In this document: piece after piece, positions 1,391 to 58,540 of the stretch
Layout of the letters: each line of letters opens with the position of its first letter
How positions within the stretch are numbered: the first letter of the stretch is position 1
Assembly: GCA_010909165.1 (NCBI GenBank)
Contig: VJWM01000273.1
Span: 62,001 to 126,000 of the forward strand
Origin: Anthoceros angustus
Lineage: Eukaryota; Plantae; Anthocerotophyta
Length of the DNA stretch: 64,000 bases
Direction: 5' to 3'
Program-made: the position numbers and the translations under genes
Notes under the pieces: generated by a model
Seen by the model: the letters and a program-made list of their open reading frames with translations, nothing else
Databases searched by the model: none
What the model was told of the DNA's origin: nothing

Positions 1391-1449
1391 AGTCCGGAGC
1401 ACTCCGGACTTATTCCTTCCTTTCCGCCTTATTTTCCACTCCGCGCCTA

Positions 1450-10452: not shown

Positions 10453-10982
10453 AAAAATAAATCATTAGAGGTCAAGCATGTATATCGTAGACAACTAGGA
10501 CTAGGACATGGATAAGGAGGAGACAATTGAGAGCTAAAAAGATATCACTAGGAACCATATATAGATGTAGGAGACCACTAGAAGATAAAGATATATATCG
10601 GAGATCATTAGAGCTAGATCTATCCTTAGTCCCTAATGGTCTTTGAAATCATATCTCCTAGTGTCTTTAACGCATTACTAAGAATACATATTAGAAACCA
10701 TGAGGGGCTAACAGATATTAGAGTCCAACAAAAATATACTAGTATATTTTCCGTTGGACTCTAATATGTATTCAAAGTTACAAATGACAATAGGCATTCA
10801 CCAAAATCGAGGCACCATATGTTCCCATTCCAATACTAGTGCTGCGGCATCTCGAGCTTGGCAGCGGACATCAGATTTCAAGAAACATTATAGAAATTTC
10901 CAGATCAGATTTCTAGTAAAATCAAGCACCCCAAATCCTATTTCCACCACACCTGATTTCCACTGCAAACATGGTATTTCTT

Positions 10983-16950: not shown

Positions 16951-17074
16951 TTACTTTTACCTCGATGCACTGTCTCGGCCCGAGTGTAGTCCCGACCACT
17001 CCAGCACTTGTGGTGCGGTCCGCCTCCGTGAGAGTGTAGTCCAGGCTCTCCGGAGTGCTCCGAGTCCTTCGCTT

Positions 17075-17222
17075 ACTCCCGAGTCCTTCGCCCACTCCCG
17101 AGTCCTCCGACCTAATCCGGAGTCCTCCGACCCACTCCGGAGTCCTCCGACCCACTCCAAAGTCCTCCGACCCACTCCGGAGTCCTCCGACCCAATTCAA
17201 GTCCTTGACCTTACTCCGAGTG
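17075..17222. repeat. 20-bp tandem array, copy B
   Basis: Same unit as 1241-1390. Confidence 0.9.
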
Positions 17223-17279
17223 CAGTCTCGAGCACCCGACTTATTCCTTCCTTTCCGCCTTATTTTCCACTCCGCGCCT

Positions 17280-22600: not shown

Positions 22601-24949
22601 TTGACCACTTCATGGAAGGAAGCAGAAGTGGTCGACAAATAATCCCGCTTGTGCAGAAACATAGGAGCCATCCGCCGACCCATCAATCCTGTTACAATCC
22701 TCCACCACCGGTTCCTGACGCCTTTAACCAGGCGGCCAGGTTCTTTTCCGGACGCCCATCACCAAACCGCCCGCCTCCTCCTACCGCGCCATACACCTCC
22801 TAACCAATTCCAGTCCCAACTCGGGCTTCGCCTAATTCCCCCGCCTTGCTTGTCCTTCTGTGGCGCGACACTCGCACTCATCCCAAGTTCATGTAATTCC
22901 ACCGCTCTTCCATGAAGCCAAGCTCCTCCTTCACCACCTCAAATAACTTTCCAATGATCCATGTTTGGCCATGGAGCAAGCACAATCACGACCTTGGGCG
23001 CCATCCCTCCACAAGAGTCTCCTGTCGCGCCTCAACCGATCGCCTGACCACCCGGGCGGGCCTGTGGTTCCTACCTCCTCACCAACCCAGCGCCTTCCTC
23101 CTCTAGCGACTGCGATGTCGGATGGGGGTTCGAGCTCCTTCCCTCGTGCGCCCGCGCCTCCCCGCAGATCGCGGTTCCCGATGAACTCCTCGACTGCCGC
23201 CTCGCCCTCACAGGCCCGCCGCTGCCTCCCGCCCCACCGGCGCTCCGTTGTCCGAACGGATTACATTCCTAGGGTTAAGTTCCTGTTCCCTACCCCTGCT
23301 CGACCGCGACCGCCGCTCCACACCCCAATCCACAACCCCACACTCATTCGCATTTAACGTTGACTCCAAGCCTATAGACCTATCACTCCTAATTATACCA
23401 ACCCCTACCTCACATATATAGACCTTTAGTGGACATCCCAAGTCCATGGGCCAAGGAACATCGAGTTCTAATTCTTATTATCTAACCTAAGAAATAAAAC
23501 AAGAAAAACCATAGGCCAAGGACGCTTTCTATAAATACCCTTGCCTACCGTCAACCCCGACTTATTTTCACACCACACACCAAAAACAAAAAAACACTTC
23601 AAGGCACATCCCAACAGGGGGTTTCCGAGTCCGTGACGTTACATCTACTCGGAACTGGGTAGGCGTGCTCGCGCAGGGGCCTGATGGGGAGTCGGGCCCT
23701 AACGGCCCGGCTGCGGATGAAGGAGCCGGGGGGTTCGGTGGCATACCCCCTGGAGAAGGAGGCGAGGTGGTGGGAGAAGCAGCCCCAGCGGAGGAGGAGA
23801 TCGAGGGCGGGGTCCGACCCGCCGAGGAAGGGGGAGGGGTGAGAAGTTCCCTCACCCCACGAATAAGGGAAGAGCCCGGGCCAGGATAGGAGACCAACGC
23901 AAAAAGGGACCGGAGGAGTTAGTGGCGACATCAGCCAGCAAACGGGGAATGAAGACTCTTTGAAGATGCTCCATGATAGGTATGGACAAACCAAACAGGA
24001 GGAAAGGAGCAAAGAGGATTCCAACCCAGGGGACGTCACCGATGAGGAGGAAGGAAGGAAGAGAGATGGGGACCAGACTACCATAGTAGGTAGTCAGCCT
24101 ACCCCGGTAGTCTGCCAGACTACCGCGGTAGGGTGCTTATAGAAGGAGCGCGGCCGGGCGGCGGAGGTTGGAAAATGGACGCCTCCCCTGCTTTTGACAG
24201 AGGAATCACGCCGCCTCAACCATGTAAGGGGCAACATGGTAGCCGCCAAAGCTAGGAAGAGAGCACTTGGGAGGGCTTTGCAAAAAGACAAGAGAGCCAA
24301 TCAGAACGCAAAGTTTGGGCAACTAAATTCAAAAGAGCTATTTTAACAAACAAGTTGAGGCTAAAAATGATTAAGAGAGCATGTCGAAATTCTTCAAAAC
24401 CTAAGTCAAGTTGTAGGATATTGTTAGAATAGAAGATATCGCCAGACAGAATCGGGCCAAACGACCTAGCGGGCGAGGCGGGCCCAAAAGGGCGGATAGG
24501 AGCCGGGCAGATCACCAGAGGGTCGCCATCTACACAAAGAAAAGGGAGCGTATCATCTGAGTCGCGGATCGTGCCAGAAAGCAAATGAACATAGGAAGTC
24601 CCACTATCTGCTCATCAATAAAAAATTCAGGTTCATTAGGCAGCCAGAATGAGATCTCATCCGGCTCGCCCAGACCTGTATCCTGAAGGACTGTCATGTG
24701 TCGAGGAGCCTAGCGTGAGATTGAAGGATCAAGCGCAAGGAGGAGCAATGAACGGAGAAAAGAGGAAATGCTCACCCGCCTCACACCCCGGAGGAGAAAT
24801 CTAGGGGAAATTAGCAGCTAAAGGCTCAAGCCAGGCTAACGGTACTTGTGCCTCAGGGTATTATTGCTAGTGACAAGGAAGGGAGTGTTTGGGAGTAAAG
24901 CTTTGGAGCCCACGCTGAATTGAGAGAGTAATTCTCGTTAGAAGCGTTA

Positions 24950-27010: not shown

Positions 27011-27889
27011 ATAGATTTTGAAGGCCAACAATGAAGTCTACGGTTGGCCAAGAGGAGGACAATAGGGTCCTCATGATGATGAAGGAGCGCAGTGCAGAGG
27101 CCTGATTTTGATGAGGCTAAACATGGACTCCGAGGAACTGGGAGAAGGTGGAGAAGAGAGCGCGGTGAGTGGAAGATGGCGTGAGAGCAAGGAGGGGGAC
27201 AGCCTCCGGGGGGTCACCTACCACCAGAGACACCACCACCAGTAGTCCGCCAGATGCGGTAGACAACCACCCACGTAGTCCGCCACTACCGGGTAAGCAA
27301 CCGCGCGGGCTTGGGGGAGCGGCCGCCGAGGCTCGAGGGGAAGGAGCCCAGTGACACACCCCGGAATAGAAGAGGAGGTGGGGAGACAACCCCACCGAGG
27401 ACCAAGGACGGGTCCACCCGAGGAAGGGGAGGAGGGTGAGAAGTTCCCTCACCCGATAAGGGAAGAGCTGTGAGAAGAGATGCAAAAAGGGCCCAAGAAG
27501 TTAGACATCACCAAAATTGGGGAAAAGACTTTGAGAAATGCTCCATGATAGGTATGGACAAATCAAACAGGAAAGGAGCAAGGAGATCTCCACCCAAGAG
27601 ACATCCGATGGAGAAGAAGAGAAGAAGGAGAAGGACTGACTACCATGGTAGTCACCACCCCGTAGTCCCGTGACCACCGCGAGTGAGCAAGGAAAGGGGC
27701 GCCTGAGGCGCGGAGGGGCGCGATTGCTGGAGGACAGAGAATGTGGCGCGCCCGCGGAGATGGAGGAAGGGGCAGATTGTACTTGCCCCACACATTGGGA
27801 AGATGACAAGGACTGGGAAGGCAAGAGCAAAAGGAGGGCGAGGGAGCCAATCCACAACGCTGGCCACCACCCAAAGAGATGAAGACTAG

Positions 27890-29997
27890 AATGGTCAAAG
27901 ACCATAAATGATGAGAGGAATAATAGAAAGGATAGGTGATGTAGGTCGACATCCTTTAAGGATGATTAGGTGAAGTTGCTAGAATAGAATTTACCAAGGA
28001 TCGATAATACTTAGATGCCAGCCTTAAATGTCAAGTAGGAAATAATAGAATATTGGAAAAGGTGACCGCAGAGGGTCACCTAAGGGAGGTTGTATGTGGA
28101 AGGCCTCCTATAAGAGGAGGAGGATTTCACAAAGTAAAGTATCATGTCTTGCGCCCATACTCCCGAGTCCTTTGCCTTGTAAAGGAATTTCGTGAGCCAA
28201 CGCATTCGTAGAGAGGAAGTCATGGTCGGAGTGCTTGGTGGAGGACTTGCTCGCAAGTGCCTAAACGAGTTGCTCCTTGTGAATGGTTGTGAAATTGCTT
28301 TGCTTTGGGTGTGTGGCAATGCCTGTGAACTCTGAGAGGTAGATCCAGGAAAGACTGGAGGTTCTCACGAGTGTCAAACTCATAGCAACCGCCCAAGGAA
28401 GAACTTGGGTGGAGGCCGACCCTGTGCCAGCTGTAAGGGCGAGTCAAGAAGCCCGAATCGAGGTTAGAATAGGAGGAAGAGGATGAGATGAGTAGAGGAT
28501 TAGAGGTGTAGGTGTTAGTGGAAGGCCACGCAGAGCCTAAGGGACGAATCCCAACTGCAAGTAAAAGAGCGCCCCCGAGTGGAGAAGAGTGGTCTTAGAA
28601 GTAGGGACGAAATTGCGTGTGGATGTGGGGTCCCGGGCGCCCGTGATAGGCTCCTCCCGCTAAGGCGTGACCTGCAATTGTGTGTCGCTGTAGGTCGAGG
28701 ATTGGTGATTTTTCGAAAGGCAAGTGGTGCACTGAAGAGGGAGAGTAGAGGGCGCCTTGCTTGTTTAGAAGGCTGAGAAGTTGTGTCACCGCAGTAGCGA
28801 TCGGCATCACAGACCCTCGAACTTTCACACAGTCTCATGGGACGAAACCCAACGCACGGCGGCAAAGGACAAGTGTGGCCGCTTAGAGTGGGAGGATCCT
28901 GGGAGCCCCGGGTTTTCCTACCACACAATCCATGGGGAGACGCCCCTACCCTCAAAGCAGGATTAGGACTAGGTATGGTCAAAGGCCATAAATGAACTAG
29001 GAGAGAGGAAGGATAGGTGAGATAGGATGACATCCTTTAAGGATGATCTTAGGTGAGTTGCTAGAATAGAATTCACCCAATCGTTGCACTTAGATGCCTT
29101 AAATGTCAGAGGGAAATAATAGAATATTGGAAAAGGTGACCGCGGAGGGTCACCAAGGGAGGTGTATGAAGGCCCTCAAGAGGAGGAGGATTTTGCCACA
29201 AAAAGTATCGCCCGCGCCCATACCGCAAGTCCTTTGCCCTGTAAAGGAATTTTGTGCCAGCTGTGAGCCAACGTCATTCGGTAGAGAGGAAGTCGCGTGG
29301 CGGAGTTTGGTGGAGGGCTTGCTCCCGCAAGTGCCTAAACGAGTTGCTCCTTGTGAATGGTTGCCGTGAAATTGCTTTGCTTTGGGTGTGTGGCAATGCC
29401 TGTGAACTCTCGGCTTGAGGGTAGACTACAGGGAAAGACTCGGAGGTTCTCACGGTGTCAAACCCATAGCAACCGCCCAAGGAAGAACTTGGTGTAGGCC
29501 GACCGGCAAGCAGCTTGCAGCCGAGGCCAAGTGTCGAACTGAGGTTAATAGGAGGAAGAGGAGGAGATGAAAAGAGGATTAGAGTGTAGGTGCTAGTGGA
29601 AGGCCACAGGCAGAGCCTAAGGGACGAATCCCAAATCTGCAAGTAAAAGGGCGCTCCCTGAGTGGAGAAGATTGGTCTTTGAAGTAGGGACGAAATTGCG
29701 GTGTGGATCAGGGGGTCCCTGGACGCCCGTGATAGGCTCCTCGCTGCTAAGGCAAGACCTGCAATTGTGTGTCATTGTAGGTCGAGGATTGATTTTTCTA
29801 GCAAGGCAAGTGTGTGTAAGAGGAGAGAGGGCGCCTGCTTGTTTAGAAGGTCGAAGTTGTGTCACGCAGTAGCGATTGTTTCCACAAGACTCAGCTTTTA
29901 CACAAGTCTCATGGGACTAAAACCCAACGCGTAAGCGATAGTGGGATAAGTGTGGCCGCTTAGAGGGGCTCTAAGCCCCGGGTTTTCCTCCCAGACA
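27890..29997 (+). repeat. Two tandem copies (~1.08 kb period) of the 3' UTR/PPT-like tract plus LTR of the GC-rich family
   Basis: ggtcaaag(a/g)ccataaatga...ccccgggttttcct.cca.aCA occurs twice, ending at ~28924 and ~29997; homologous to the reverse LTR at 34482-35500. Confidence 0.7.
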
Positions 29998-34481: not shown

Positions 34482-35500
34482 TGTGGGAGGGATCCCGGCT
34501 CCTTAGATGCACCTCTAGCGCCACACTTATCCCACCGCTGCTTAGACGCTGGGTTTCGGCCCCATGAGACTTGTGGAACTACAATCTTGAGAAATCATAC
34601 CACCAGTACACACACTCACCTTCTCTAAACAAGCAAGGCGCCTCTCACGCTCCTCTACAGTACCGCATCGCTCAGAACTCACCAAACCTCAACCTACAAC
34701 GACACCACACAATTGCAGGTCACGTCTTAACAGCAAGGTGTCTATCACGGGCGCCCAGGGACCCCCTGACCCACACCGCAACTTCGTCCCTACTCCTAAG
34801 ACACTCTTCTCCACACAGGGAGCGCCCTCTTACTTGCAGATTTGGGATTCGTCCCTTAGGCTCTGCCTGTGGCCTTCCGTTTTTCCTACACTCTAATCCT
34901 CCTCACAACTCTCTCAATCAACAACGCCCTCTTCTTCTCTACTCATCTACCCTTCCTTCCTCCACAATCTCCTACTCTAACACCAATTGCTGGCTCATTA
35001 ATTCCAACTCGCCCTTACGACAATCCTGGGTCCGTCCGGAAATTAACGAGTTCTTCCTTGGGCTATGTGGTTTGTACCAGACGAGAACCTGTGGAGTCTT
35101 TCCGTAGTCTACCCTCAAGCCGAGAGTTCCTTGAGCATCGCCACACACTCAAAGCAAAACAATTCACACAAAGAACCATTCACAAGGGGAGCTAGGGGCG
35201 CCTGCAAAGAGCAAGCCCTCCACCCACTCCGACCGCGCGTTCTCCTCTCTACCTGGCTTTTTGCAGAAATTCTGCACACAAAGTGAAGGACTGGAGGATG
35301 GGAGCGCAAGACACGATAATTTTACTTCACAAGCTCCCTCCTTTTATAGGGAGGTCCTCATACAGCCTCGGCGCGCCTCCGGCACTCACTCCTTATTTTA
35401 GTGTATCCTATTGCGACTTTTTAAGTTCGACATCCAAGCATCTTGGGTAAAATTCTATTCTAGCAAATTCACCTATGTGAGCCTTAATGGCTCCTCAACA
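34482..35500 (-). repeat. LTR of copy D of the GC-rich family
   Basis: Reverse complement matches the LTRs at 27940-29997; ends ...cctcccaCA at 34482; inner boundary approximate. Confidence 0.65.
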
Positions 35501-36826
35501 TTCCTATCTAGCTAGTCAACACACTTCATGACAAGCATTAATGCTGTCCTCCTCTAAAGAAAAGTCTTCCAAGTGGCATCTTGTCCCATGTCTTCAAGCT
35601 AATTTAAGGACTTCTTATGAATCCCTTCCTTATCTTGATGCCTATCTTGAGTTCCTTCCTCCAATAAAATAGCCCGGCTCTCTTAGCCACCGGCTCATCC
35701 TCGCCTCCTCTTCCTCTCACTTGTGGAGCAAGTGAGCCTTGCTCCCCTGCACCCATGTTAGGAGGTTGGTCTTCTCCTTGTGATTCTTGCTCCATTCTGC
35801 AAGATCAACCCCTCTTCCTTCTTTTCCCGCAAGGGCCAAGGTACGCCTCCCTCACAAATCCATGCTAGCAGCCTTTGAATCCGCTTCTTCCGGCCCTCCT
35901 ACCATGGTAGGACCTTCTCCTACGGTAGGAGTCCCTCACCAGGGAACTCCTCCTACCACGGTAGGAGTTCCTACCGGGTTTTCTTCTTCCTTACCCCTTC
36001 CGGGTGATTCTCTCCACTGCAGCTTCCGCTTCACTTGCTTCTCCACAGTGCGAAGTTTCTTCACCGTTGCTTGGGACACTCTCCAAGTCTAAGGCTTCCG
36101 GTTGGACTTGCATGAGGGCCTCCCTATCATCGTCATGAGGTCCCAACATCCTCCTCTCAGAAGTCGCAACAACTCGTTAGTGGCCTTGAGCACCTTGTTG
36201 TGAAGATGGGCTGCAAATCGTTGTTGTGCCATCTCCAATTCGTAATCCTCAAGCCATACTCCATGCTCACACTTGCTTTTGTAAGCATCTCGCTCAAGGC
36301 CAGCTCACCGCCTTGACATGGAGAGCCACATTCTCCTCTCATTCTGCAGTTGGCGGATCAATCTCTCAGGGCATAATCACCAAATCTTCCCTCACCGCCA
36401 ACATATGCCGCACCACCGCCTCATGACCTTTCTCCTTTGCCATTTCTTCCTCCAACTCCCCTATCCTCCTAGGGAGTTGTGCATTCTCCGTTTTGGACTG
36501 CTTCCATTTCCAATCTTTGGACAAAATGTGTCCGTTCTTCCAGCTCTTCTTCCTTCAATTCCAGCCTCATGGATTTCTCCCAGCTCCTTTTCCATGTCAC
36601 TAATCTTCACACTGTGGCTATGACCCGCTCATGTGCGCCTACTTGCCTTTGTCCCCTCATTTGCTGCAGAGATTGCTCGTCTTGACCTTCCTCCATTAGC
36701 AGCACTTGCTTGTCTTCCGCCTTCTTTTCCCATGTGCGCACCATGTGAGCAAGTTGCTCCACCTTCTCCTCTCGAGCTGCCAATTGCTTGGTAAGAGCCT
36801 TGTTCTCTCGAATATGATTGTTTGTT
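35500..36826 (-). mobile_element. Copy D internal region, downstream half (coiled-coil ORF end)
   Basis: IRENKALTKQLAAREEKVEQLAHMVRTWEKKAEDKQ appears to continue the ORF that breaks at 45883. Confidence 0.55.
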
Positions 36827-37204
36827 GAAGGGGGTGAATATCCAACCCTCCTCGTTGAACGAAACCTCCTTCACTAATAACACATGGTTCCCAAAACCGT
36901 GTTTTTGATTTGGTGTCCCATACCATGGACAATGATTCCTACTGAATGCTTTGTGAAACAACAAAACCGAGGAAGGGTCAAGGGCGCTGGCGGCCGCCTT
37001 AGTGGTCAAAAGTAGTTTGTTTTGTGCGATGATCCATTTCCACATTGACAAAAGGCCTAGTAATAACACAACAAAACTAGGTATGGGTACGTCGTCTGCA
37101 AGCGGTTGGAGACCATCCGCTTTTAGGTTCCGCCAAAATTGACCACTAACGGACAATAGTTCACAACTACAAACGCCTACACGCGCTAACTGACTCAACC
37201 GGTG

Positions 37205-40200
37205 CTTGCTGACACCGAATCATAAACCAAGTTCAGATCCGCTCAAGTTCTTCCTCATCGAAAGTGTCGACTTCAACCAAAGCCCTCGAGTCCTCGTTCC
37301 CATCCGTGTCTTCATCATTACCATCGCCCCGATCGCCAAACGTTCTCGAGTGTTTGTTGGCCAGCCTCCAACAAATCGCCCGCTCTTATTCCGACGGCAC
37401 TCAAAGAAACCACTTGTGCTTTCAAGGAGTCCTTCTCACGATGCAAACCTCCTTTGCCTGTAATCGTGCAAGTCCTCTCCTGGGCTTCAAAATTCAACTC
37501 CTCAAGCGCATCCGGAGCACCTCAAATCCATGAATTCTTTGTGAAATATAACTCGCACATCTCAAGTCACCTCGATGGCGATACAACTCCTTCCCCGCAA
37601 GTAACGCAATAGTTGTGCCGCTCCGAGCATGCATCCAACCCAATCTCCTCTTTGGAGAAGGTTGTAATAAGTCTCGTCATCAACCCTAGTGGTCTCGGGC
37701 GGACCACCAACTTGTCATGTGACATGTAAACTGTTTTTGACAATCGTGGTGAGCAATGAGACCTTCCATTGTTGAATGTTCCATGCATAGCATTTGGTAG
37801 CATTGCATCCCCTTTGTGCTCCCATCCTTGGACCCCATCCGATAGTTATGTATTCCAGTCTCAAATCCACCCTCATTGTTCATGTTTGTCTTGTCCCATA
37901 CGAACGACACCAAGCCCCTTTCTGCTCCACTTTCGCATTGATTCTCGTATGTGCCTCCACTCCATGCATCACAATCATCCTCAGTTCATCGCTAGTGGTC
38001 TTCTCAAAAGCTTTGGAAGAGAATCCATCATTGCTTATCCACCCTCTTGTCCATAGGTCCAATGTTAAAACCTCGGGGCACATCCATGACGAGAAGTGTG
38101 TATTGCCTTGCCCTGAGAAAACCACGCATATCTTGTACATCACGACTTTCGATTTGGTATTGTACGGCTCTCTGATTGATGTGAAAACCTCAAGACCTTC
38201 CTCCGGTCCTTGTCCGCTAATGCACGTCTTCAAGCCCTTTCCAATTGTTTATCTCGAAAATAAAATGGAAGTCACTGAGTTTTGTGACGATGTCTTTCAA
38301 TTGCTGAAAACGTACGTTAGTCATTAGGGAGAGGCGCCCGGCCGCCCTCATTTTCGCGTTGGATTGAAGGCGCTGGCGGCCCTACAAACCCATATATCTG
38401 AGTGAGGCGCGAATGATCAAACATATGGGGACGGGCGAGGGCGCCGGCCGCCCGCATCACCCCCATCCCTGTTCAATATGACGAAACGATGCGGACATAC
38501 CTTTCCGGAGAAGGTGTTGGAATCGAGCTAGCATATTGTCCGTAGAGAATGTAAAGGATACTCCTCGCACCTCTTCAAATGACGAGAGATGCTTCACCAT
38601 TGCTACTTGTATGATATGAAATTTTTTCCAGCATGTGATCTCTTCCTCCATCCCCTTCGGATCTATCCCTTAACACCTTCTGGCGCTTATCGATTTTGGC
38701 CACACTCTCAACCGGTATTCCACGAAAAGATTTCGGCTTGGCCAACATGTCTCTAGGCTTGACACACTATCAACTGCCGGTCATCCGCCAGCTTGCGCTT
38801 CCTTTCTTGCTTGTCCTCAGAACGTGTTTCTTCCGCTCGAAGCTCTCGCCTTCCCATTTGGAAAAATCTTGTCCACATTCTCCCACACCTTCCCATCCCG
38901 CTTAGCAATACAGAATGTGGGTCCGATTGTCCACTTTGTTCGCTTGTACACGCCCTCCCGCCCTTCATCGCCTTCAATCAAACCTAGGACTTTGTACACA
39001 GTATTTCCGTGACATGGTCATTTGCACTTCTTCCCTCTTTGCGATGATCAACTCGTCCCTTAAATACGACTTGCTCTATAAAGTTCATCTTCTTTCTTCG
39101 GACATCATATTGTGATCTGCAAGCACCCGCATCTCATGCAAGAAGCCCACAATACACATGTGCTTCAACATATTGGAACCGCTTCTTTCCGGGTGAGATA
39201 TCGATAAGTGCTTCATAGCTGCGTAGGTGTGGTTACCACCAAGAACTCCCATGACATACTTCTTTGCACGCCATTTCCTTGCTCGATCGACACTCGCTCG
39301 GATCAATCATACACAAAAGAACTCCTCCTCTATCCGCCTTTCGCTATAACACGGGCAAGATAGTTTGCCCAAGCCTCATCAACCCTCCGGATCTGCTGAG
39401 TAACATGCGCCGCCACCTCAAGTTCTCCAACTTCACTAACCTTTTCTGCACCACCTTCGGTATGCGAATCCCTTAAGCGAGTCAATGGATCGCATCCCTC
39501 ATAGCCTCTTCCAACCTTTCCTCGTCGGTTTGAATATGAACGTGGTTATGTCCCCTCCCATGGCATCTTCTCTTCCACCCTTCTTTGCCTTTTGGTTTTC
39601 CTTCCCACCTCCGTCCCCTGTGTGCGCCGCACTTCCCTTGCGCCGCCACTCGAGGTCACACCGTTCGGGCATGAAGGTTGAGGAGCGCCGCCGGCGCCTC
39701 CTCTTCGCCCATACCCACATCCCCGCATCCGCCATGTCCTTTTCTCCAGGGGACGAACCGCTCGACCCGACGCCGCTCTTGCCTGGTGGTGGGAGGATCA
39801 GCCGGGCCGGCCGGCCCCAAACCACCGCACCTTTTGAATCTTATAAACCCCCGGATCCGCGTTGGCGCTCTTGGGAACTGAAGATGACTAGGGCGCCGGC
39901 AGCGCCCCGCGCATCCGGGTCATATTGCATGGTGGGAACCATAAGGAGTCGAGTTAGAAGATTGGGAAGGTCCTCAAGATCTGTCTGATCGTGCCTGATC
40001 CTTCATGTCAATGCGCTTGACCAACTGGTAAAGCCCCATCTTCCTCGTCTGATGGGCCAAGCTCACTCTCCTCATGATCTTCTTCCATACCTTCCACCAC
40101 ATCACCATTCTCTGTATGGAGGCTTGGGCTCGACGCATAGACATTTCCCTCTTGTGGGCCCTCATAGTTTGTGTAATCTTTTCGCAGATAGCTCGTATGA

Positions 40201-40962
40201 GTGCCCTCGCAACTAGTGGTGCCTGGAAGATGGTAGGAAAAACATATCCACAATGTCGACTCTCACATGTGAAGAAATGCGAAGGAATGCGATTCCGGGC
40301 AATACTGCCTCCCGCATGGAATCGCGGAAATCTTCAACAAGGCCACGAGGTGCACACTTCTTCCAGTGAAACCCTTTCGGCTAAGAACAAGAGACTTGTA
40401 TAAACGCGGATCTGGGAAACTTCCTCATCTTGGTATGCCTTTGTGGTGCACAAAAAGTGAACTCGCTCCCTTCATTGAAGTCCAAAGTAGCCCAAACAAC
40501 CCACCGCTCTTGCTCTCTCGATTTGGCGAGCCCCCTATATCCCATGATCCACAACTTCAACAAAGGGGTCCATGGCGCAAGAGGTGGATCCCACAAGCAT
40601 CCTCCTTCTCCACAACCACAACATTGTCGAGCCTGAGACACGCTGATATGGACAGCCTCATAGGTGGGATGGAATCGGATGAATAGGTTGCCGCTCTTAC
40701 CAACCTTCGTCCCTTGCTCTCCGAACCAGTGGAACTGATTTTGGCGGAGGATGCGCCGCTGCGATTTTGCTCAGAAGAATGCTGCCCCTCCGTTGGAGCA
40801 TGGGATGGCAAGATGTCTCCGGCGACTGGATGGAGGTGCCTCCGATGTCCGCGTGGGCGGTGCGCTCCCTCGCCTTTGAGCCTCCTCGGCCTTCTCACGC
40901 ATGGCGGGGGTCATATTCCTCAAAGGCTGGTCCTTCTTGCTCCCGCCGCTTGCCATCTTCAT
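37205..40962 (-). CDS. ParB/Srx-like domain plus beta-class N6-adenine/N4-cytosine DNA methyltransferase (N6_N4_Mtase-like); spliced, frameshifted as assembled
   Basis: Start MKMASGGSKK at 40962/40956. ParB-like motifs QIRRVDEAWANYL (39361-39398), VLGGNHTYAAMKHL (~39205-39246) and DHNMMSEE. Intron acceptor gactaac...ttttcag at 38304. Motif IV TLLVMDVPRG (38070-38102) precedes motif I GDWV(L)DACSGSGTT..YLRGRSCIAIE(G)DLRC (37560-37650), the beta-class order. Confidence 0.75.
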
Positions 40963-41599
40963 CTCTAATTCAAGGCAACCCCACTCCGTAATCACAAAGA
41001 GATGCACAACAGTGACCGCTAACTCACTGCTCAAGATCGCCCGCCTCAAGAGCTTACCGCGGCTTGCTCTCGAAAGTTGCGCCCAACCCGAGCTTGGCTT
41101 CTAGGGCGGGCGAGCGCGGCGCCTCACTCCCAAAGATGCGATACGCGGTGGTGCGCTCGAGAAGCGCACACTGAGGTGTGCGCCGAAATCGACATGAACT
41201 ACTGTCCTGGCCTTGCAACGAGCTTAAGTTCAAAAGAGGAGGCCTTAACGAGAAGGCGTGTAAAAGTAGGGTTTTCTTCCATAACCCCAAATGGTTTTCA
41301 TAAGTGTTTCTCAAAATAACCCTACCTTAAACTCAATTTTGACGAGCTTACTATTTTAGACCCGCCCGCCATCAACTTTTCGCCAGTGGCTGCAATTATG
41401 CTTGGATTTTCCACATATCGTGCATCACCAACCACTTCATTGTCCGCACTTATTTCGAGGCAATCCCATCAACCTCTTAGGCGGTGGCACTGGGATGCGA
41501 GGGCCCCCGACGCCATAGCAAAGCCGGAGGGAGGCTTCGATATCCGCTAGCCACTACCGGTGCTCGCAAAGTCTTGTGCTTTCCTTCCTTGCGCATTGA

Positions 41600-44500
41600 T
41601 GCGGATGTTGCATTTGACGACACGCAGGAGATGAGGTTGGTCTTGTTTCGCCATTGTCTTTTCCCCGCATACCATTCATGATACAAGATGCAACTTGTAA
41701 CCATGCCTGCGGGGCGCAGGAGGTTCAAGTGGAGGACCCGGGCCTCGCAATTCCAAAGAAATGGAGACATGGTCCGCAGAGGAAGAGGCTCGCTATCTTG
41801 AACGCCTCCAAGTTCACATATTCGGTGCAATACCCACGGAGTCCTCCACATGAAGGTTTGTTGTGGTTACCAGCTTTTCCCACTTTTGGAAGAGGCTAGC
41901 TTGTTAAGTCCGTGTTCGCACCGCCCATGTAGGCTCTAACGAGGCGTCGACACTTGGCGCCAAAACATGCCGCGGGTGCCTCACCCCGCTGGAATTTGCA
42001 TCTACCAGCCCATTGAGGGAGCCCATCTACACGCCTCCCGGATCCAATTCGAGTCCTCATCCCTCAACTGCGTGTGGATGGACCACCTGTTGCACGCAGG
42101 GGATTGTTTGATGGTGGTCACGGTAGAAGACCTCCCCGGCGTGAGCACGAACCCTCCGAGGATGAAGATGAACGACCACTTGACACCGCACCGCGCGGCT
42201 GCTTCCATCCCAAGCCGCTGGGTGAGACTTTGACAGCGTCAAGCGAGCAAAGCATTGCACCTCAACGGAGACGCGCTGGTGTCACATTGAAGAAAAGTGA
42301 AGGAGAGGTAGTGACGGCGGATTGAAAACCATGTTGCAATCAAATGTGCTTGGTGACAAAAGAAAAGTTTTGGAGCAGAGTACCGATTCCTAAGGATGGG
42401 CAGCAAGAGACATTTCTAGAGTCCTTGGTTCAAGAGAGAGGGGATGTGAAAGTATGCACACATTTTGGGGTCCATTCAAGGCTTGAAGGCATTTAGAAGA
42501 GTATATTGCATAGGCACTGATATGAGGAATCAAGAGCGAATCATTTAATGCCCGTGGATGGTTTCGTGCCTAACCCCAAACCACGCCTTCTTATGCTTGG
42601 GAGCGATATCCTCGGATGGATAAGACATTTCTAATGATCGAGGCAGAACGTGGAGGTCTTCAACCTTCCGACATACACAAGGTTGGAAATATGGAGTATG
42701 TACGCGAATGCGAAACCTCCGGGATCCTCTATGTGAAATATCCATGGTTCTTGAAGTTATGGAAAAGCAACTTCCCAAGAGTGAAAATACCAAAATCCAA
42801 GGTTTTCCACGTCACTCTGCGCAGTCTGAAGAGCATTAGGAACAACCACAACCGATCAAGGTAATTGTTACCACTTTCGGCAGTTGACATGCATGGAACT
42901 TATGGAAATGGTTTTCTTGAGTGGGGAATGGTTGTTTTGAACTCGAGGCTTTATGGGCAAGATCCCTATAACCGGGTCACTGATCTTTGTATGATGGGAT
43001 GGTGCGCCACCACCGTCAGTCCCACATATGCAAAACCCTTGGGATGAAACCCCGAGAGGCCCTGTACATGTGGTGGGACGCCGCCGGCCCTGGAGGAACC
43101 CTCGGTTGAAGAGCCCCTCGGAGACGCGCCGGCCGGCGCCCACCTGTGTGCTTTAACGGCACCATAGGTTCCTCCGAGGGATACCAACTGCCAACGCCCA
43201 CATGGCGAAGACCATAGGGTCACCCTACAATTTATACATGTGGTGGCACGCCTCCATAACCAAAAGCATGGATTGTGGTTGCTCAGTACGCCACCCACAA
43301 TTGATCGAAATGCGCTAGGACGGAACATGAAGGTTCTTCCTCCGTTGATTTGGGGCGGACGCCGCCTGTGTAATCGTCCAAAGATAGGAGGGTCCTTCAT
43401 ATCTAATCGGATGTCTCTTCAAATGTACCGACGAGTGTGTATGTCAAAAGAAAAATATCAAGCGGCTTTAGATGCCCATCGTTTGCGGTTACATCGAGCG
43501 GTGAAGATGGCGAAACATGAGCAAGAGTTATGTAGAACCACATATGTACCTTCTACTTTCAATCGATGGAATGGACCAAAAGAAGACGGAGATTCCCATC
43601 TACTTGATGGCCAAAGAACTTGGATGAGGAGTGATTCGTGTTCATGTGGTTGGGTGCATGATCCACAATTACACGTTTAAGGCAAGAGCTTACTTGCATT
43701 ATGCGAACTTGAATGATGCCAATCACGATTACCATCATCCGATGTTATTCATAACTACGAAGGAGTATTGCCGAAAGTGTTATATTTGCAATTGGACAAC
43801 ACTGCAGAGAACAAGAATCAAGCTTTGCATATCTCAACATGCTCGTGGACATGGGGACGTTTGAAAAGGTGAAAGTGGGGTTTTGTTGGTGGGGCATACG
43901 CATGATCAAATCGACCAAATGTTTTCATGCTTTTCAAAAGCTTAAAACACAAGGAAGCTCACACTCTGACCGCTGTGAGATTTTGATTAGTGCGTACACT
44001 CCACCGGAGGTGAAGATATTGATCAAGTTCGGACTTCCTCATATGTTTGGCCCATAAGGCAAGGGAAGGTGGACACGCATACAAGGCGCATCAAAAAATT
44101 AAACAACCTCTCTTTCCGACCAATTCAAAATTACGAGAGAAGCCAAAGGTGACCGTGGGTTTGTATCGCATCGAGGCAAGATTCCACATCACCTATTGGG
44201 AGACAGAGGCCGGGTTGAGTTTTTGACATTCGTCGTTGGACAATAACAGCTAACCGCCTCCGGTCAAGGGATAGAAAAGGAAAGTTGGCGACTTATCACC
44301 TACGGATGGTGTGGCTCATTTGAAGGAAGGTCTTCGGCCCTTAGGCCTTATGTGACATCGGAGGAATACAAATGGTGGGAAGCTCGGACCAACAAGAGAT
44401 TCATTATTGTTCAAAACAACATTGGGCCTGGCCTCCTCCATCCTTGGAAGTGGTATTCGAGGTCCAAGTAGAAGTAAACCCCAACCTGCGACTTGATGAA

Positions 44501-45050
44501 GCTTTATTACGGGAGGCGTTGTTGAGGACCTTCCACAACGAGATATGTATTTGGGACGATACCAAAACTTGGAAAGACAAGGAGGGAATGACACGCTTTG
44601 AATGGTGATGTGTTGAAATAAATAAGGGCATGTTCATTGCGCCCAAAGTGACACGCATAACCATTTTGGATTGGGAAGGTGATTGATTTGTTGTTTGATG
44701 ACCCACTCACTTACTTGTTCATGCATGTAGCACACAGATGCGTTTGAGGGTAGGTACGTTGAAGAATACATAGGGGATGGCACCAAGCAACAAACCGGGA
44801 AAAGGGGTCAAGGGTTGAACCTAAAAATATTGAAGTATATGTATGTAAAACCGTCATCTTGTATTATGGTTTCACCTTGAATTCTAAACATCTGTATGCG
44901 GTAGACAAGAAGGCAATCAAGGACAAGTCAATGAATTGCGGGCTTCATACAACCAGCAAGTCAAAGTGGCAGAGGATGAAGATGATTGATGATGCCGAAC
45001 CCAACGAATATGACGGCGTCAATTCAGAAGGAGAGTAGATTGCACTTCGA
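41600..45050 (+). CDS. DUF7869-type / Sola-like D-D-D transposase, frameshifted as assembled
   Basis: FLKLWKSNFPRVKIPK (42748-42795), IDGMDQKKTEIP (43562-43597), VHVVGCMIH, LPKVLYLQLDNTAENKNQ (43768-43821), LVGHTHDQIDQMFS (43886-43927). Gene ends approximate. Confidence 0.75.
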
Positions 45051-45882
45051 ATGTTAAAAGTGCGCATAGGCCGAGCCTCATTTTCTGCTTTGAGAAGGGA
45101 AACTGCAAGACACATTCGACACGTTCATTGTAGCCCATTCTTGGGGAAAGTTTGAAACGACCAGTATATTCTACAAGATGTTAGCCGATGGAAACTCCTC
45201 TCCAAATCGACTTTTTAGTCCTAAAGCACTAGCGCAGTGGGACACCCTTTGCAAATTTGCACATTTAGAGCATGTGCACATTTAGGGCTTGCACGATGCC
45301 ACCACTAATAATGCATCCATACGACTTTCCTGCTTTTTGATCACGGCTAGTCACATGACTATACATAGCATCCGCCGATGGTTGGTGACAGACCCTCTTG
45401 TCTCAAAATCGATTCCTCCAACCTACCAAGGGATAGGAGATGACATATCACTTTCGGGATTGTGGAGGTGGGTGCGCTGGCGGCCCGCACCCACGATTTC
45501 CATGAATTCCATGTCGCATGTAAGGGATTCATGACCCATACCACCACCACCCGCATGGAAGCGCCTGGGGAAACTTGAAATATGAGAGTTCGACATTGGT
45601 TGGACCATGTTTTCCCGATTGTTTGTGGGGCATCGTCAAATGTACTCATCTTCACTGTCATGGTGCTCCATTTTGTAAATGGGCTCTAAAGTCGGCATAG
45701 GTGTAAACTACAACCATTGCTCCACATGTCAGAACGGCAAGCTGTCGTGTTGGTGTTCACCCTTCTTTCGATCATCTTTTCCAAAGACAAGCGGTGAACA
45801 AGGGATTCAACACCATCCAAAACCCTTCGCAAATAAAGAGTAAACCCTCATGTCAATAATCACCCTTGTTCTAAATAGGATG

Positions 45883-47880
45883 GTTTGTTTCCTGTCTGCC
45901 TCAAGACTCTTCTCCAAGTGCTCCACTTGAGCTTCCATCCTCATAACATCCTCCGCCACTGGGTTTCCGCCGCCTACTTTCCCTTGCTTGGTAGGTCCTT
46001 GTCTTCCGCCTCCTTCAAGAATTCAACTCTCCTCTTGGCCTCCATGTCTACCTTGAACATCTCCCCATGCGCAGCATCTCCTCCAACATGTCCAAGTCTC
46101 CTTTCTTACCTCCGGAGACTCAAGGCCTTTGCCTTGCTCATGGGATCTTACATCCCTTGCTTCCCTATGATGAGCTCCCGCTCATCACTTGGTGGGGCAA
46201 CTCCTCCCACCGTGACTCCATCCGCCGCCCACCTAAGGGGCCGGTTGCCTTCTTATCTCCGCTTGGGAGCTTCCAAAACCGTGACTTCCTTTCCTCCTAC
46301 CGTGGTAGGAGGTGCTCCTACCACCAGGACTACTTCCCACCGTGGTAGGACTAATTCGCCACCCAGGCCTTGTCATGAGAGGACGAAAGGGGTCCCAAAC
46401 CACGTGGGAACACCTCCCACCTCGCAGGCGGGATTCGCCATGGTAGGATCTATCCTACCTTCCATCTCCGCATCCTCCGCGGTCCAACTTCAAATCCCCT
46501 ACAACTTCTCCTTGCAAGTCCTCCCGCATCCTCGGCCTATCTGAGGGATTCCTTCCAAAATAATGTCCTGTGGTGCTGCACCTCCTTTAGCGCAAAGCAC
46601 CAAGCACTCCCTCTCCCCGGCCGTAAGTACACAATGTTAAAGGGATGCTTGGAATCATCCAACTCCTTACTTGTGAGTAGCCCTCTACTTCCCACAAATG
46701 CACTAGATAAGTGCTAAGATAGCATGGCCTTGACTGTCTTCATCCGACGTTGGGTTTTCAAAGAACTTTTCCTTGGTAGGTGTATGCTTCATACATGATG
46801 AGCCCCAATCCGCTTCGCCCTTGAGTGATCTTCCATAGAAAATGGAGGAAGGTAGAAAATATGACACCCTTGGATTGCTCACCAAGCCCAAAACAATTCT
46901 TGTGAACAATCTCCACTTGGGCTCCAAGATTTGGTCCGTCTGCCAACCGTTCTTGGACTTAGCCTTCATGCCCCTTGCATAAGTGTAAGGGCTCCTTGGG
47001 AAGATCCGCCGTTGATGCACGCTTGCCTCCACTGCTTCCTTCCATCAACGTGATTCCGCTATCCTCGCTATCCGCCCCGCCATATACCGCGATGCTCATG
47101 TCCAACACCGTGGATCCGTCTGTGTTTCCTATCCGTAAGCCACCTCTTCCGTCACGCAAATTAGCAAAACCTCTTCTATCAATTCAAGGTTGTAAGACCA
47201 ATGTCGCCCATACACCCACTCTAGCTGAATATTCTCCTCGCTGCCCAAGGTCGAAAGTCCGAAAGGTCTCTAGAGGATAGCTGGCCTATAGTAAATAATG
47301 GCATGTCAAATTTCCACCTCCGGTCCGATCCTCCCGCCTTAGACCTCTTGCCGCCTCGCGCCACCTCCCTTGGTGGACGCTCCTTCCTTGGCTACTACCT
47401 CCTTGCCCTTGGTCATGGTAGGCTTGGTCATGGCCTCCTTGGTTAGTACTTGCACGAAATTGAAGAAAAGTGATGCCTCCTGCAATTCCTGCACCTCCCG
47501 CTTCTTATCCTTGCAAACGCTTTCTCCTCCTCGCGATTTGCTCTTGCTCACAGCTCAAAGGTCCTTGCCTCGCCCCTCAAACCCCGATTTCGCAAGAGAA
47601 AGCTCAACCCCCACGGACTCTTACACCGCCACAATTTAGGAGCCCTTCCTGCACGGTTTCCTAGCAATCTTGCCACGCTCCACCCTCCTAGGCACCCTCA
47701 CGAGCTTGGCAAGTGTTGGGTTGCGCCCAACCTTCTTCTCCCTTCTCTTCCTCTTTTCCTCCTTCCTCTCTTGGGCGCCCGCGGATTTCGCCTCCTTGCC
47801 GAGCTTGCGCCTCTCCTTCTCCTCCTGCACGGGGCGTGTTGCTGTATGGGGCCTTGGGAAGCTTGAGGTGTGGCGGCGCC
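45883..47880 (-). mobile_element. Copy D internal region, upstream half (orphan ORF homolog plus a coiled-coil ORF)
   Basis: GEADWG..MYEAYTYQGKV..HAILALI matches the family ORF; ends MEAQVEHLEKSLEADRKQ at the insertion point. Confidence 0.6.
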
Positions 47881-53299: not shown

Positions 53300-55895
53300 C
53301 TATTGGCTCTGTTCCCTCTTCAGGGATCACTTCTTTGGGTGGCACTTCTGGTCCTGCTCTGCAAGAAACTGGTCTTCCAACAGGATTGTGTCTCGATATG
53401 ATCCCGCTTTTGGAAGACGGGACTTATCTGCTGAGTGGTAGATGGAGAGGTAGCTGATTGTCCGTTTTTGTTTGTCTTTTTGATCAGGACAGGCTCTTTG
53501 GATGCACCTCCGCATGGAATTTCTCGCAGTGTGCAAATTGATGAACTTGGTCGCTGCTTTTTGTTCAACCAAAAGGAGACCTCAGTTTCTGGTTTGTCCA
53601 TCTACTATACGCTAATAGAGCCTTTGAATGGATCTCTCCCGGTGATCTTTTCATATCAGTCTTGGAAAATTGTGAGGAAGAAGTGTTGGCATATTTTGAT
53701 CTCATTGTGTTTGGATGGAAATACCTAGAGAATATCTCCAAGAGTTTATATCGCCCCAAGGATTTCTTTACGGGTTTTGATATTACTGACCATGCTAGTA
53801 TGAATGCATGTATCTGTATGTCTGCCAAACGGCTTTTCCCTTTTATTGACAAAGCCACAGTCTCGTCAAATGACCCCTCCTCCTTACACGTCCAGTCTAT
53901 GTCCTTGGATATCCTACATCACCCCGCTTACGTACTTGCGTTAGCAAGGGGCTAAACCCCACTAGAATACCACCAGTGGTTGATGCTCTGGTAACTGCCT
54001 TTGTGCATGTCATTGAGATTCTTCAAAAACGTGGACATCAAGCTTTTGATTGTAATGGATTGACCTTTGTGTCAAAGCCCAATAAACCTGATTTTATTAT
54101 GTGGTGGTTTATATGGAAACCGCTACCATGGAACGCAATAAGAGACAGCATACCGCATCAAAGACATGACACATGTCTTTGAAGAACCTTCCCCATCAAG
54201 AATGAAATCTCTTGGTTATTCGTGCGAAGACTTGTATATCTACTGCCCGACAAAGCTAGACTACACCGCTTGCTTTCATCCGCAGACACATAAGGCAACA
54301 AGTAATCAGCAAGCACTGGCCTTAGTTTGGATTTAAAACTCTAACTCTTTCTGCCTCAATCTTGCTCGGAGTGAGACCAAAGTGAGATTTCCTCCTCCTT
54401 AGGAGTTAGAGAATGATACTTGAGCTTTGGCCAGCCATGGACGATGGCCACTTTCAAAGGCAACACACAGGTTGGAAATATAGATGGCTTACCAATGCTG
54501 CTCAATTGTTTATTTCTTCTGTCAGAAATGATCTATTGACCATAGCCTAACCAAAGCTTTGTTCCCTGCGGCCGAAAGAATGGGCCCAAACGCAATCACA
54601 AAGACACCCTACCCTGCTGTTCTGGGCGTACAAACCTCCTTGTATTGGATCCATGGACTCCACTTTGGATGGCTTTTAAACCTCGCCAAACATGAGGTGC
54701 ATGATCTGCCTAGCCCCATGTATATTGCATCACCGCTATGAGGCAATCCTACTAGTGATTCGATGCACTCAATGACTGCTGCTATTTTGGCAAACATTAC
54801 CGCTTTTAAGGCTAGTGAACAAGGGCTTCACATCCTCAAAGAATTTGACAGCCATTTCAAGATGTCCGCTTTGACCATGCGCCTTTCCTTCAATTCCATG
54901 GTGCCGAGCCTCTTGGTAGTATGCCTCCAAGAGGCTTGTCTTTTACACAAGAGCGATTGGGTGCTCTCCACTTTCTTTATGCAAACTCCGCTTATGTCCA
55001 ATCAATTGTCAATAAGTGTTTGCTGCAAAGATCTTGGCATACCTAGGTTTCTCTGCTCCGCTTCCTGGTGCAGTGTCAGATTTTTTTCTCGCTATGAAGT
55101 CTACAGCCATTCTGCATTGGCTAAGCTTGAAGACTTCGACTCAGCGGCCTTGTTTGCACATGCTCCAAGACACATGGACGACCTGTGTTGGTTTAACACC
55201 AGTATCCCTAATCAATTCCTGGATCCGGCTACACCAAGGACCCCAGATTCGCCATTTTGGATTCATCCCTTGGATGTGGTGGCTATTGAACCCGAGATCC
55301 ATAAGTTTGGGGAAGATTTGGAAGGTAACAAGATTGGGATTGCTGCTCACTTCTTGTCTTTTCAATTCACTATCATAGACCCTGTGCGTGGACTGATTTC
55401 TTTCACCAAATATGATAAAAGAAGGGCACCCCCCTTCAAGTGTGCTCAGTTCATTCACTTGGAGTCTAACAGATCTGTCTCTCAAGCATACAAGGTTATT
55501 ATCTCGCAGGTTTTTCCTTTGCCATATATTTGCTTCACAGCGGAGGCAATTTTACACGAGATTTTGGTGATGGTCAACACCTTTATGGCTAATGGCTTCC
55601 AGGAAGCAAGATTGCTGAGAATCATTGTCAGGTTCTTGCAACGAAGCTCTTTCCCCGATGCGAGAGTGGCCAAGGAAGACATTCTCGTAATGCTTTATGC
55701 TCCAATGCCTTCTATCCTTCCTGACTATAATTGTGGTATTCCCACCCACGCTTGCTCCTTACAATAAATTTCTCCCTCAGCAAAAAGATCCTCCGTGCTA
55801 TGGTGCGTATCTCACTAAGGCCTGCATATTGCGCTACCTCGGTATGGATTCTTTCAAATCACTGTTGGTGGAGGGTATTTACATAACAGGAGGTA
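53300..55895 (+). mobile_element. Penelope-like retroelement (RT clearest in ORF 54763-55767), degenerate
   Basis: DLGIP..CS..WCS..F..YE, RHMDDLCWFN, AHFLSFQF, KYDKRR.PPF....FIHLESNRSVSQAYKVIISQV, FMANGF: PLE-type RT and thumb. No GIY-YIG recognised. Confidence 0.75.
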
Positions 55896-56052
55896 CGTAT
55901 ATACATACATATATATACATATATACATATATATACATATATACATACATACATACATATATACATATATATATACATATATACATACATATATATATAC
56001 ATACATACATACATATACATATATATATATATATACATACATATATATACAT

Positions 56053-56083
<31 letters not shown>

Positions 56084-56200
56084 CATATATACATATATAT
56101 ATATATACATACATACATACATACATACATACATACATACATACACACACACATACACACATACACACATACATACATATACATGGTATGTATGTATGTG
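55896..56200. repeat. Compound (TA)n/(TACA)n/(CA)n microsatellite, ~300 bp
   Basis: Direct reading; orientation flips to (TATG)n at ~56186. Confidence 0.97.
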
Positions 56201-57959: not shown

Positions 57960-58540
57960 GAGTAATCACCCAGCCCTAAGCCATCCATATGCTTATAGTG
58001 TTTTGGCTTTGAAAGTGTTTTGGCTTTGAAAGTGCTTTGGTTAGAATGTCGGCCACATTATCATCTGTTCCAACAAAGCGAACCTTTGTTACCCCTCTAT
58101 CCACAGCATTCCTAATGTAGTGATGGGATATCTCTATATGCTTGGTGCGCACGTGGAAGCGAGGGTTAGCAACCAAGGCAAGGGCTGACATGTTGTCGCA
58201 AAATATGGGGGTAGGATCTCACAGTCCGCCTAAGTCGCAGTAAGAACCTCCTTCCCATTCACCTCCTTGGTGGCTTCGAGAGATTTATACCGCCTCCGCT
58301 GAAGACAAAGATATAGAGGTCGCTTTGCAACTCCAATTGACGGCGCCCCGCAAGAAGAAAGTAATATGTGGAGAGGTCATGACGGAGTCAAGATCGACGC
58401 CCAATCGGTATCCAGAAACCTTGTAGAATGAGTTTAGCCTGCTACTACGCTTTATATATGAGCCCATGTCAAAGTGCCTTTTAAGTATCCGAAAATACGC
58501 TTGATTAACCCAATGAGCTCCCCGCCCGTGTTTTAGGAAT
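57960..58540 (-). pseudogene. Ty1/copia RT-RNase H C-terminal fragment
   Basis: GAVNWSCKATSISLSSAEA and ALALVANPRFHVRTKHIEISHHYIRNAV...DNVADILTKAL. Confidence 0.9.

Follow-up and report, generated by a model that had tools for sequence, protein, structure and literature searches.

A segment of about 9 kb in the 64-kb window (the whole stretch of DNA that was analysed) is best explained as an autonomous DNA transposon from the Sola1 superfamily, old and by now inactivated, which carries on its minus strand a methylase-like accessory gene with a possible ParB/sulfiredoxin-like domain; we put the probability of this reading at roughly 70%. The element probably extends from about 36827 or 36828 to 45867, with an uncertain right end that may reach 45889. 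The methylase gene (minus strand, 37497–39306) and the transposase gene (plus strand, 42574–44150) lie on opposite strands within one insertion. Both are broken pseudogenes, and this copy is long dead and inactive today. The first-pass annotation had regarded the pairing of a transposase with a methylase as possibly undescribed, but it was published in 2025 for the Ectocarpus element Sola1-1_Ec32 (PMC12477816, Genome Biology 2025). As this layout is already in the literature, the segment adds one more case to a kind of element that is known.

A probable Sola1 transposon inserted into a host repeat

The window is eukaryotic, rich in repeats and without long intact genes; just five open reading frames (ORFs) reach ≥220 amino acids (aa). 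For the searches it was cut into 2440 stop-to-stop ORF pieces. The following features belong to the plus-strand gene:

42574–44150, plus strand: Sola1-type DDD transposase pseudogene, with motifs in three frames and matches to Pfam DUF7869 and Ectocarpus Sola1-1
42745–42795, plus strand: transposase block WFLKLWKSNFPRVKIPK
43559–43585, plus strand: transposase block SIDGMDQKK
43786–43818, plus strand: transposase block LQLDNTAENKN
43889–43927, plus strand: transposase block VGHTHDQIDQMFS (VGHTHDQIDQ)

A three-frame reading of 42.3–45.9 kb yielded these four transposase blocks, spread across three frames, with at least four frame changes in the transposase core. The D-D-D transposase predicted on this strand is borne out by the blocks SIDGMDQKK, LQLDNTAENKN and VGHTHDQIDQ. 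Elements of the Sola1 superfamily are known to encode transposases of the DDD type. Pfam DUF7869 is matched by a pair of adjacent pieces, which differ in frame and are collinear on the profile, namely 43717–43869 (25.5 bits, profile positions 49–77) and 43865–43942 (30.9 bits with a cut-off of 26, profile positions 97–116). As a further query we used the core of the Sola1-1_Ec32 transposase, taken from the text of Supplementary file 2 of PMC12477816, a protein which contains ...VQVDNTVAENKNNY...MMVGHTHIQIDQIFSCFAKA... and ...YFNRIWAQEFPHLKLKP... (PMC12477816). In a phmmer search with this core the piece 43865–43942 ranked first among the 2440 pieces (E=1.5e-6, 75% identity over 20 aa), the best alignment being LLVGHTHDQIDQMFSCFSKA in the window against MMVGHTHIQIDQIFSCFAKA in Sola1-1_Ec32, and the pieces 43717–43869 and 42574–42861 matched as well, with collinear query positions. 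Because identical residues match both, DUF7869 appears to correspond to the Sola1 catalytic core. On the matches to Sola1-1_Ec32 and DUF7869 we assign the plus-strand gene, by its sequence, to the Sola1 (DDD) transposases. A search for protein homologues with the transposase piece returned nothing. A KDZ or Zisupton transposase was also considered and is ruled out by the match to Sola1, with no KDZ-related match in Pfam; the comparison with KDZ/TET elements drawn at first therefore does not hold for the transposase, which is Sola1 and not KDZ.

The flanks of the segment belong to a host repeat with a coiled-coil ORF on the minus strand, which is split by the ~9-kb segment. By tblastx the left flank (35826–36555) and the right flank (46564–47034) match related copies of the repeat at 19326–19753 / 17933–18292 and 3390–3702 / 1988–2246. 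The two flanks are 1034 bp apart in the reference copy and 1016 bp apart at the insertion once 9055 bp are subtracted. The flanks are thus collinear with related copies of the host repeat, and therefore a block of ~9 kb has been inserted into the host-repeat ORF. That the segment splits an ORF was correctly noticed at first, but its attribution to a long terminal repeat (LTR) element found no backing, since Pfam gave only a weak leucine-zipper match for the host-repeat ORFs and a protein homologue search gave no relatives.

The boundaries of the insertion are described by the following features:

36798–36826: left copy of an imperfect direct repeat, CCTTGTTCTCTCGAATATGATTGTTTGTT, including GTTTGTT at 36820–36826
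45864–45889: right-hand copy of that repeat, CCTTGTTCTAAATAGGATGGTTTGTT, including GTTTGTT at 45883–45889
36827–36856, plus strand: left terminus, GAAGGGGGTGAATATCC..., conserved in a second copy at 10983–11013
45854–45868: candidate right terminus, similar in reverse complement (CAAGGGTGATTATTG) to the left end (AAGGGGGTGAATAT)

The GTTTGTT heptamers originally named as the bounding repeats are found at both positions, but they are not the whole repeat; they form the 3' part of the longer direct repeat, whose two copies (29 and 26 nt) align with 23 matches, 3 mismatches and a 3-nt gap. Among 2000 shuffles none attained the score of this alignment, and among 2000 random pairs placed 9063 bp apart 6 did. 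A candidate 4-bp target duplication is given by GTTG at 36824–36827 and GTTC at 45868–45871 (3 of 4 positions matching). When 36828–45871 is deleted, which comprises an element from 36828 to 45867 and the 4-bp duplication, a coiled-coil ORF of 123 aa is restored across the junction. A 7-bp target duplication made up of GTTTGTT is not supported, since removal of the element under the 7-bp model leaves the host ORF unrestored; a target duplication of 26–29 bp was rejected for the same reason.

At the right end the reverse complement AAGGG--TGATTAT matches AAGGGGGTGAATAT of the left end at 12 of 14 positions with a 2-nt gap, which is not significant alone, and AAGGG(GG)TGA(A/T)TAT is the inverted-repeat candidate shared by the two ends. 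Another possible right end lies at 45828, giving a range of 45828 to 45889 for the right boundary. No reverse-complement match to the 17-nt left end with ≤3 mismatches was found in the window.

A methyltransferase-like gene inside the same left terminus in two copies

The minus-strand gene, the stretch between the two genes and the second copy comprise the following features:

37497–38190, minus strand: beta-class (N6A/N4C-type) DNA methyltransferase-like pseudogene, with the ORF end at 37497
38064–38096, minus strand: motif IV-like LLVMDVPRGFN
37875–37904, minus strand: FVWDKTNMNN
37651–37701, minus strand: motif X-like RPRPLGLMTRLITTFSK
37593–37638, minus strand: motif I-like LDACS/SGTT
37571–37585, minus strand: CIAIE, followed by a stop
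39088–39306, minus strand: ParB/sulfiredoxin-like piece, KYVMGVLGGNHTYAAMKHL, on the strand of the methylase domain and upstream of it (weak assignment)
39307–42573, between the divergent genes: central G+C-rich stretch, no recognisable domain
10983–12402, minus strand: truncated second copy of the same family, with left terminus (10983–10999) and methylase-like domain
12200–12229, second copy: HVMERSKGFD
12000–12020, second copy: DKTNMNN
11745–11771, second copy: VLDTCSGTT
11694–11714, second copy: CIAIEGD

The methylase-like gene is fragmented in both copies (in copy 1 its methylase domain changes frame five times or more), and Pfam was scored on single ORF pieces. The sole Pfam match for the 53-aa piece 11643–11801 (minus strand) of copy 2 is PF01555 N6_N4_Mtase (E=0.057, 13.8 bits, profile positions 182–212 of 221), while Pfam gave nothing for the pieces of copy 1. 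The PHROGs profiles 3008 and 67, both annotated "DNA methyltransferase", were matched with E=0.0034 and 0.011. We also built two hidden Markov models (HMMs) from annotated phage and E. coli genes, one from 7 beta-class methyltransferases and one from 10 phage fusions of ParB with a methyltransferase. The piece 11643–11801 came out at the top of the 2440 pieces with both of them (E=0.015 for the beta-class model and 0.028 for the ParB-methyltransferase model). Read-throughs of both copies, with an X set at each frame change, scored 18.3 and 16.9 bits against the beta-class HMM, compared to maxima of 3.2 and 7.4 bits among 2000 shuffles each. Their alignment is collinear over ~140–200 positions that lead from the DPPY position via WxK(T)N, motif X and motif I to IAIE, and it follows the permuted motif order of the beta class (IV ... 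VIII ... X - I - II). The S-adenosylmethionine (AdoMet) loop VLD[AT]CSGTT ... CIAIE aligns to VLDPFaGSGTT ... igiE, being two residues shorter and without G-x-G. Going by these motifs, the minus-strand gene is probably a beta-class methylase homologue. The claim of a beta-class methyltransferase gene on this strand was thus upheld as regards the motifs and their order, but not by a match to PF01555 at the curated threshold; the frame-joined translation that had been suggested as a check placed the read-throughs above shuffles with our beta-class HMM, and no single ORF piece gave a threshold match to PF01555 or ParB.

PDB sequence searches gave nothing relevant, and a protein homologue search with the methylase piece returned nothing. 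In an unbiased chaining of the per-piece HMM matches along the window only the motif-I piece of copy 2 was prominent and copy 1 ranked fifth, and pairwise tblastn with 15 real methylases was non-discriminating for the two loci.

The ParB-like piece contains the motif GGNHTYAAMKHL at 39205–39240, which recalls the sulfiredoxin motif GGCHRYAA and the GxxR box of ParB. It reads GGNHTYAA, with T at the position where GxxR / GG(C)HR has arginine, so the arginine is missing from the motif. Our own ParB-methyltransferase HMM places the piece on the correct motif with P ~0.04, which is not significant, and Pfam, NCBIfam and PDB gave no relevant match for it. An AlphaFold2 model of the 73-aa piece, calculated without an alignment, consists of two long helices (pTM 0.36) and is uninformative. 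The ParB fusion in the first-pass annotation is hence left with one motif and a weak PHROGs match in its favour, and with neither a Pfam threshold match nor the arginine. The central stretch 39307–42573 showed neither tandem nor parS-like arrays of repeats; additional exons or promoters may be located there.

What ties the methylase to the element is the second copy. Its methylase region at 11527–12402, which is also broken, shows ~71–73% nucleotide identity to 37396–38267. Sensitive blastn of 8–16 kb against 36–46.8 kb found this methylase block and, in addition, a 37-nt match between 10977–11013 and 36821–36856, in which the left terminus GAAGGGCGTGAATATCC of copy 2 is aligned with GAAGGGGGTGAATATCC of copy 1. 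Similarity sets in exactly at GAAGGG(G/C)GTGAATATCC, and the flanks upstream of it are unrelated. The 17-nt left termini (36827–36843 and 10983–10999) differ by a single mismatch, and when ≤3 mismatches are allowed the 17-mer occurs in the window at these two sites only, with 0.34 occurrences expected. We thus have a repeated family with a conserved left terminus at independent sites, and in both copies the 3' end of the methylase lies ~550 bp inside the left terminus in the same orientation. Since the methylase is found inside a common left terminus in two copies, it is, as judged from these alignments, part of the mobile family itself and does not lie there by chance, in agreement with its initial description as transposon cargo. 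Copy 2 is truncated at 12402; no similarity to the transposase was found beside its methylase, and it provides neither a second right end nor information on the transposase.

The sequences at 10967–10982, 36811–36826 and 45874–45889 are mutually similar (AA.ATG.T.TTT.TT) and lie just outside the left terminus of both copies and the right end of copy 1. They could reflect a target-site preference or an unrecognised terminal feature. The long direct repeat partly resembles the left flank of copy 2 (12 of 16 positions).

The region that holds the truncated second copy is bracketed by two direct copies of a repeat of ~8.4–8.6 kb (window positions 1–8439 and 15839–24478, 87% identity). In its protein sequence this repeat is akin to the host repeat that the insertion at 36827 interrupts; it carries the motif ...YLSTYLVHLW... 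and gave no Pfam or database match.

Competing explanations and known relatives

A number of results weigh against an autonomous Sola1 element with a methylase and a ParB-like domain. Regarding the methylase, the curated thresholds of Pfam, NCBIfam and PHROGs, applied to single ORF pieces, left the minus-strand gene mostly blank, and no methylase piece attains the PF01555 cut-off of 26.7 bits. The frame joins of the read-throughs were picked by eye, with the two copies as a guide. Where (D/S/N)PP(Y/F/W) is expected as the catalytic tetrad, copy 1 has DVPR and copy 2 has ERSK, and the codons at the fourth position (CGA and AAG) speak for R/K, and against an aromatic residue, in the ancestor; both copies are pseudogenes, which makes the ancestral state of the tetrad uncertain. 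In addition, the AdoMet loop has CSGTT in place of FxGxG. A staggered alignment of the two copies (A6) compared by hhalign with 15 methylases was placed on the right motif with a probability of only 10%, and an exhaustive profile search with A6 against 1.84 billion proteins retrieved only two false positives of low complexity and rich in repeats. By tblastn against phages the methylase piece had no match and the ParB-like piece had three insignificant ones (E of about 8–10). The ParB domain is supported by one motif and by the match to PHROG 723 "ParB-like partition protein" at E=0.12. Regarding the element as a whole, local alignment of 300 nt from each end gave no significant terminal inverted repeat (TIR), with a score within the range of shuffles; the flanking repeat of 26–29 bp is at odds with the 4-bp duplication expected of Sola1; and the sole second copy comes without the transposase half, which means that co-mobility of both genes is seen once only.

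Part of these findings would be accounted for if the resemblance to methyltransferases and ParB were spurious, and the minus-strand region were unrelated or non-coding with chance strings that look like motifs. The lack of any match above a curated cut-off, of any relative in the exhaustive search and of a canonical catalytic motif fits this view, as does the failure of tblastn with 15 real methyltransferases to single out the loci. We nevertheless regard it as improbable, given that Pfam, PHROGs and our own HMMs independently return DNA methyltransferase, and nothing else, for one piece, that in each copy five motifs line up in the order of the beta class, with scores far above those of shuffles, and that this accessory gene has a precedent in Sola1 in the literature. 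A composite locus is unlikely too, if a little less so. It would consist of two different elements, one with the methylase (36827 to ~39.3 kb) and one with the Sola1 part (42.5–45.9 kb), or of a Sola1 fragment with a non-autonomous element next to it or nested within it. Copy 2, which has the left terminus and the methylase with nothing transposase-like, the absence of a significant inverted repeat linking the two ends and the middle of 3.3 kb without recognisable content would all suit such an arrangement. Yet all 9 kb form a single block within the host ORF, with a single pair of flanking direct repeats and collinear flanks, copy 2 is merely truncated at 12402, and a layout of two genes on opposite strands has been published for a complete Sola1 element with TIRs of 282 bp.

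It is also conceivable that the methylase is a captured fragment of a host gene, in the manner of Pack-MULEs, with no role in the life cycle of the element. Giant algal transposons do bear captured genes, and a non-canonical catalytic motif would be in keeping with a non-functional passenger, but the gene occupies the same place by the terminus in two copies that have diverged by ~27–29%, which argues for long co-propagation, and accessory genes of the ParB-methyltransferase type recur in unrelated superfamilies of algal transposons. We therefore consider a captured fragment very unlikely.

An autonomous Sola1 element with an accessory methylase finds its nearest published counterpart in Sola1-1_Ec32 (21.5 kb), where the accessory gene is located on the strand opposite the transposase and codes for a protein of 1104 aa with ParB-like DNA-binding and N4C/N6A DNA methyltransferase domains; the element has a 4-bp target site duplication (TSD), imperfect TIRs of 282 bp and the termini AACCG-CGGTT, and similar proteins occur in green algal transposons (PMC12477816). 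Our segment shares with it near-identical catalytic blocks of the transposase, DNT(V)AENKN and VGHTH.QIDQ.FSCF.KA, and an accessory gene on the opposite strand with a methylase-like and a possible ParB-like part, the accessory proteins being matched by description only. The 4-bp TSD would match the candidate 4-bp duplication found here. Our segment differs from Sola1-1_Ec32 in its length of 9 kb, in beginning with GAAGGG... without a significant TIR detected, in its flanking repeat of 26–29 bp and in that both genes are dead. The best blastp match of the Ectocarpus Sola1-1 transposase is the Repbase Sola1 of the moss Physcomitrium (PMC12477816), and hence Sola1 itself is already known from land plants. 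In the literature searched we found no report of a pairing of Sola1 with a methylase in land plants.

Other systems are more distant. In the red alga Bostrychia moritziana PAG2 combines an N6A methylase with SET and PAG3 combines ParB with a 2-oxoglutarate (2OG) oxygenase, and their carriers are Plavaka, Zisupton, Mutator and Fanzor elements (bioRxiv 10.1101/2025.02.11.637652). These are likewise DNA-modifying and ParB-like accessory genes of transposons, thought to bind and modify the element's own DNA. In contrast to the present case methylase and ParB belong to two genes, each fused to another domain, the elements that carry them are CACTA-like Plavaka and members of other superfamilies, and PAG3 adjoins inverted-repeat arrays, none of which were found here. 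Fusions of ParB with N6_N4 methyltransferases in phages and prophages (Wolbachia phage WO, Streptococcus Javan phages, M.PhiCh1-I) have the same order of a ParB-like N-terminus followed by a beta-class methylase, and the copy-1 read-through can be aligned with their profile between the DPPY position and motif II. It does so, however, with 8–9 bits as against 17–18 bits for the generic beta-class profile, the ParB motif and DPPY are ~385 codons apart here and ~145 there, and the context here is a eukaryotic transposon. Eukaryotes have acquired phage-type ParB-linked methylases on other occasions: they occur in chlorophytes and chytrids (ParB-helix-turn-helix with a Dam-type methylase) and in haptophytes, whose clade 6 methylases go back to ParB-Tls loci of phages (Iyer et al., PMC4738411). 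As a Dam-like family (Group 2, M.EcoKI/TaqI type) that of the chlorophytes is not of the permuted beta class, and it was not placed on a transposon (PMC4738411). The fungal KDZ/Plavaka elements with TET/JBP and DIRS1 with its Dam-like domain are mobile elements that also bear DNA-modification enzymes; the former combine a KDZ/CACTA carrier with a dioxygenase, as opposed to Sola1 with an amino-methyltransferase, and DIRS1 is a retroelement.

As to how the element may have worked, a cut-and-paste Sola1 element would have entered the coiled-coil ORF of the host repeat. By analogy with Ectocarpus Sola1-1 an intact transposase would excise and reinsert the element, and an intact accessory protein might bind the element's DNA via its ParB-like domain and methylate it to N6-methyladenine (6mA) or N4-methylcytosine (4mC). 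Such marking could shield the element from host silencing, or it could tie transposition to replication, since in bacteria IS10, IS50 and IS903 are controlled by Dam methylation. The proposal that the element marks its own or host DNA is excluded for this copy at the present day, because both genes are broken, and with DVPR and ERSK in place of (D/S/N)PP(Y/F/W) methylase activity of the ancestor is hypothetical too.

Transposons equipped with DNA-marking enzymes of their own, reported to date from brown, red and green algae, have been recognised as a class only lately, and this class has a bearing on the entry of 6mA and 4mC enzymes into eukaryotes and on how mobile elements handle host silencing. 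The present locus represents an independent, diverged Sola1 family with the published two-gene layout, and with a land plant as its source it would widen the range of known hosts. We see a slim chance that it is a land-plant or streptophyte record of a once-active Sola1 lineage with a ParB-linked beta-class N6A/N4C methyltransferase. In that case this class of accessory genes would extend beyond algae, and Sola1 transposons would be a candidate vehicle or source of plant amino-methyltransferases such as Marchantia DN4MT1. With its genes decayed and its layout published the locus by itself opens no new question; its value is that of a starting point from which intact relatives may be sought in the source genome.

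Other repeats and coding fragments in the window

Outside the element a few further features were noted. An intact ORF of 334 aa with an ATG start, among the few long ORFs of the window, is located at 54763–55767 (plus strand) and has no Pfam match. At 57979–58218 (minus strand) a C-terminal fragment of a Ty1/copia polyprotein (pol) was identified by eye (...CDNMSALALVANPRFHVRTKHIEISHHYIRN...DNVADILTKAL...). The region 59524–59970 (plus strand) has a sub-threshold match to Pfam DUF4218 (E=0.0044), a domain linked to plant CACTA/En-Spm transposases, and thus gives a weak hint at a plant source. Scans with Rfam and for tRNAs yielded no clues to the lineage. A tandem duplication with a unit of ~1.05 kb and 82% identity is found at 27872–28927 / 28953–29997, and inverted partial copies of the same unit lie ~5 kb downstream at 34484–35253, possibly as the ends of another element. 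Finally, 55894–56184 is made up of a degenerate tandem repeat array with a short period, two frames of which translate to runs of IYIHTY...

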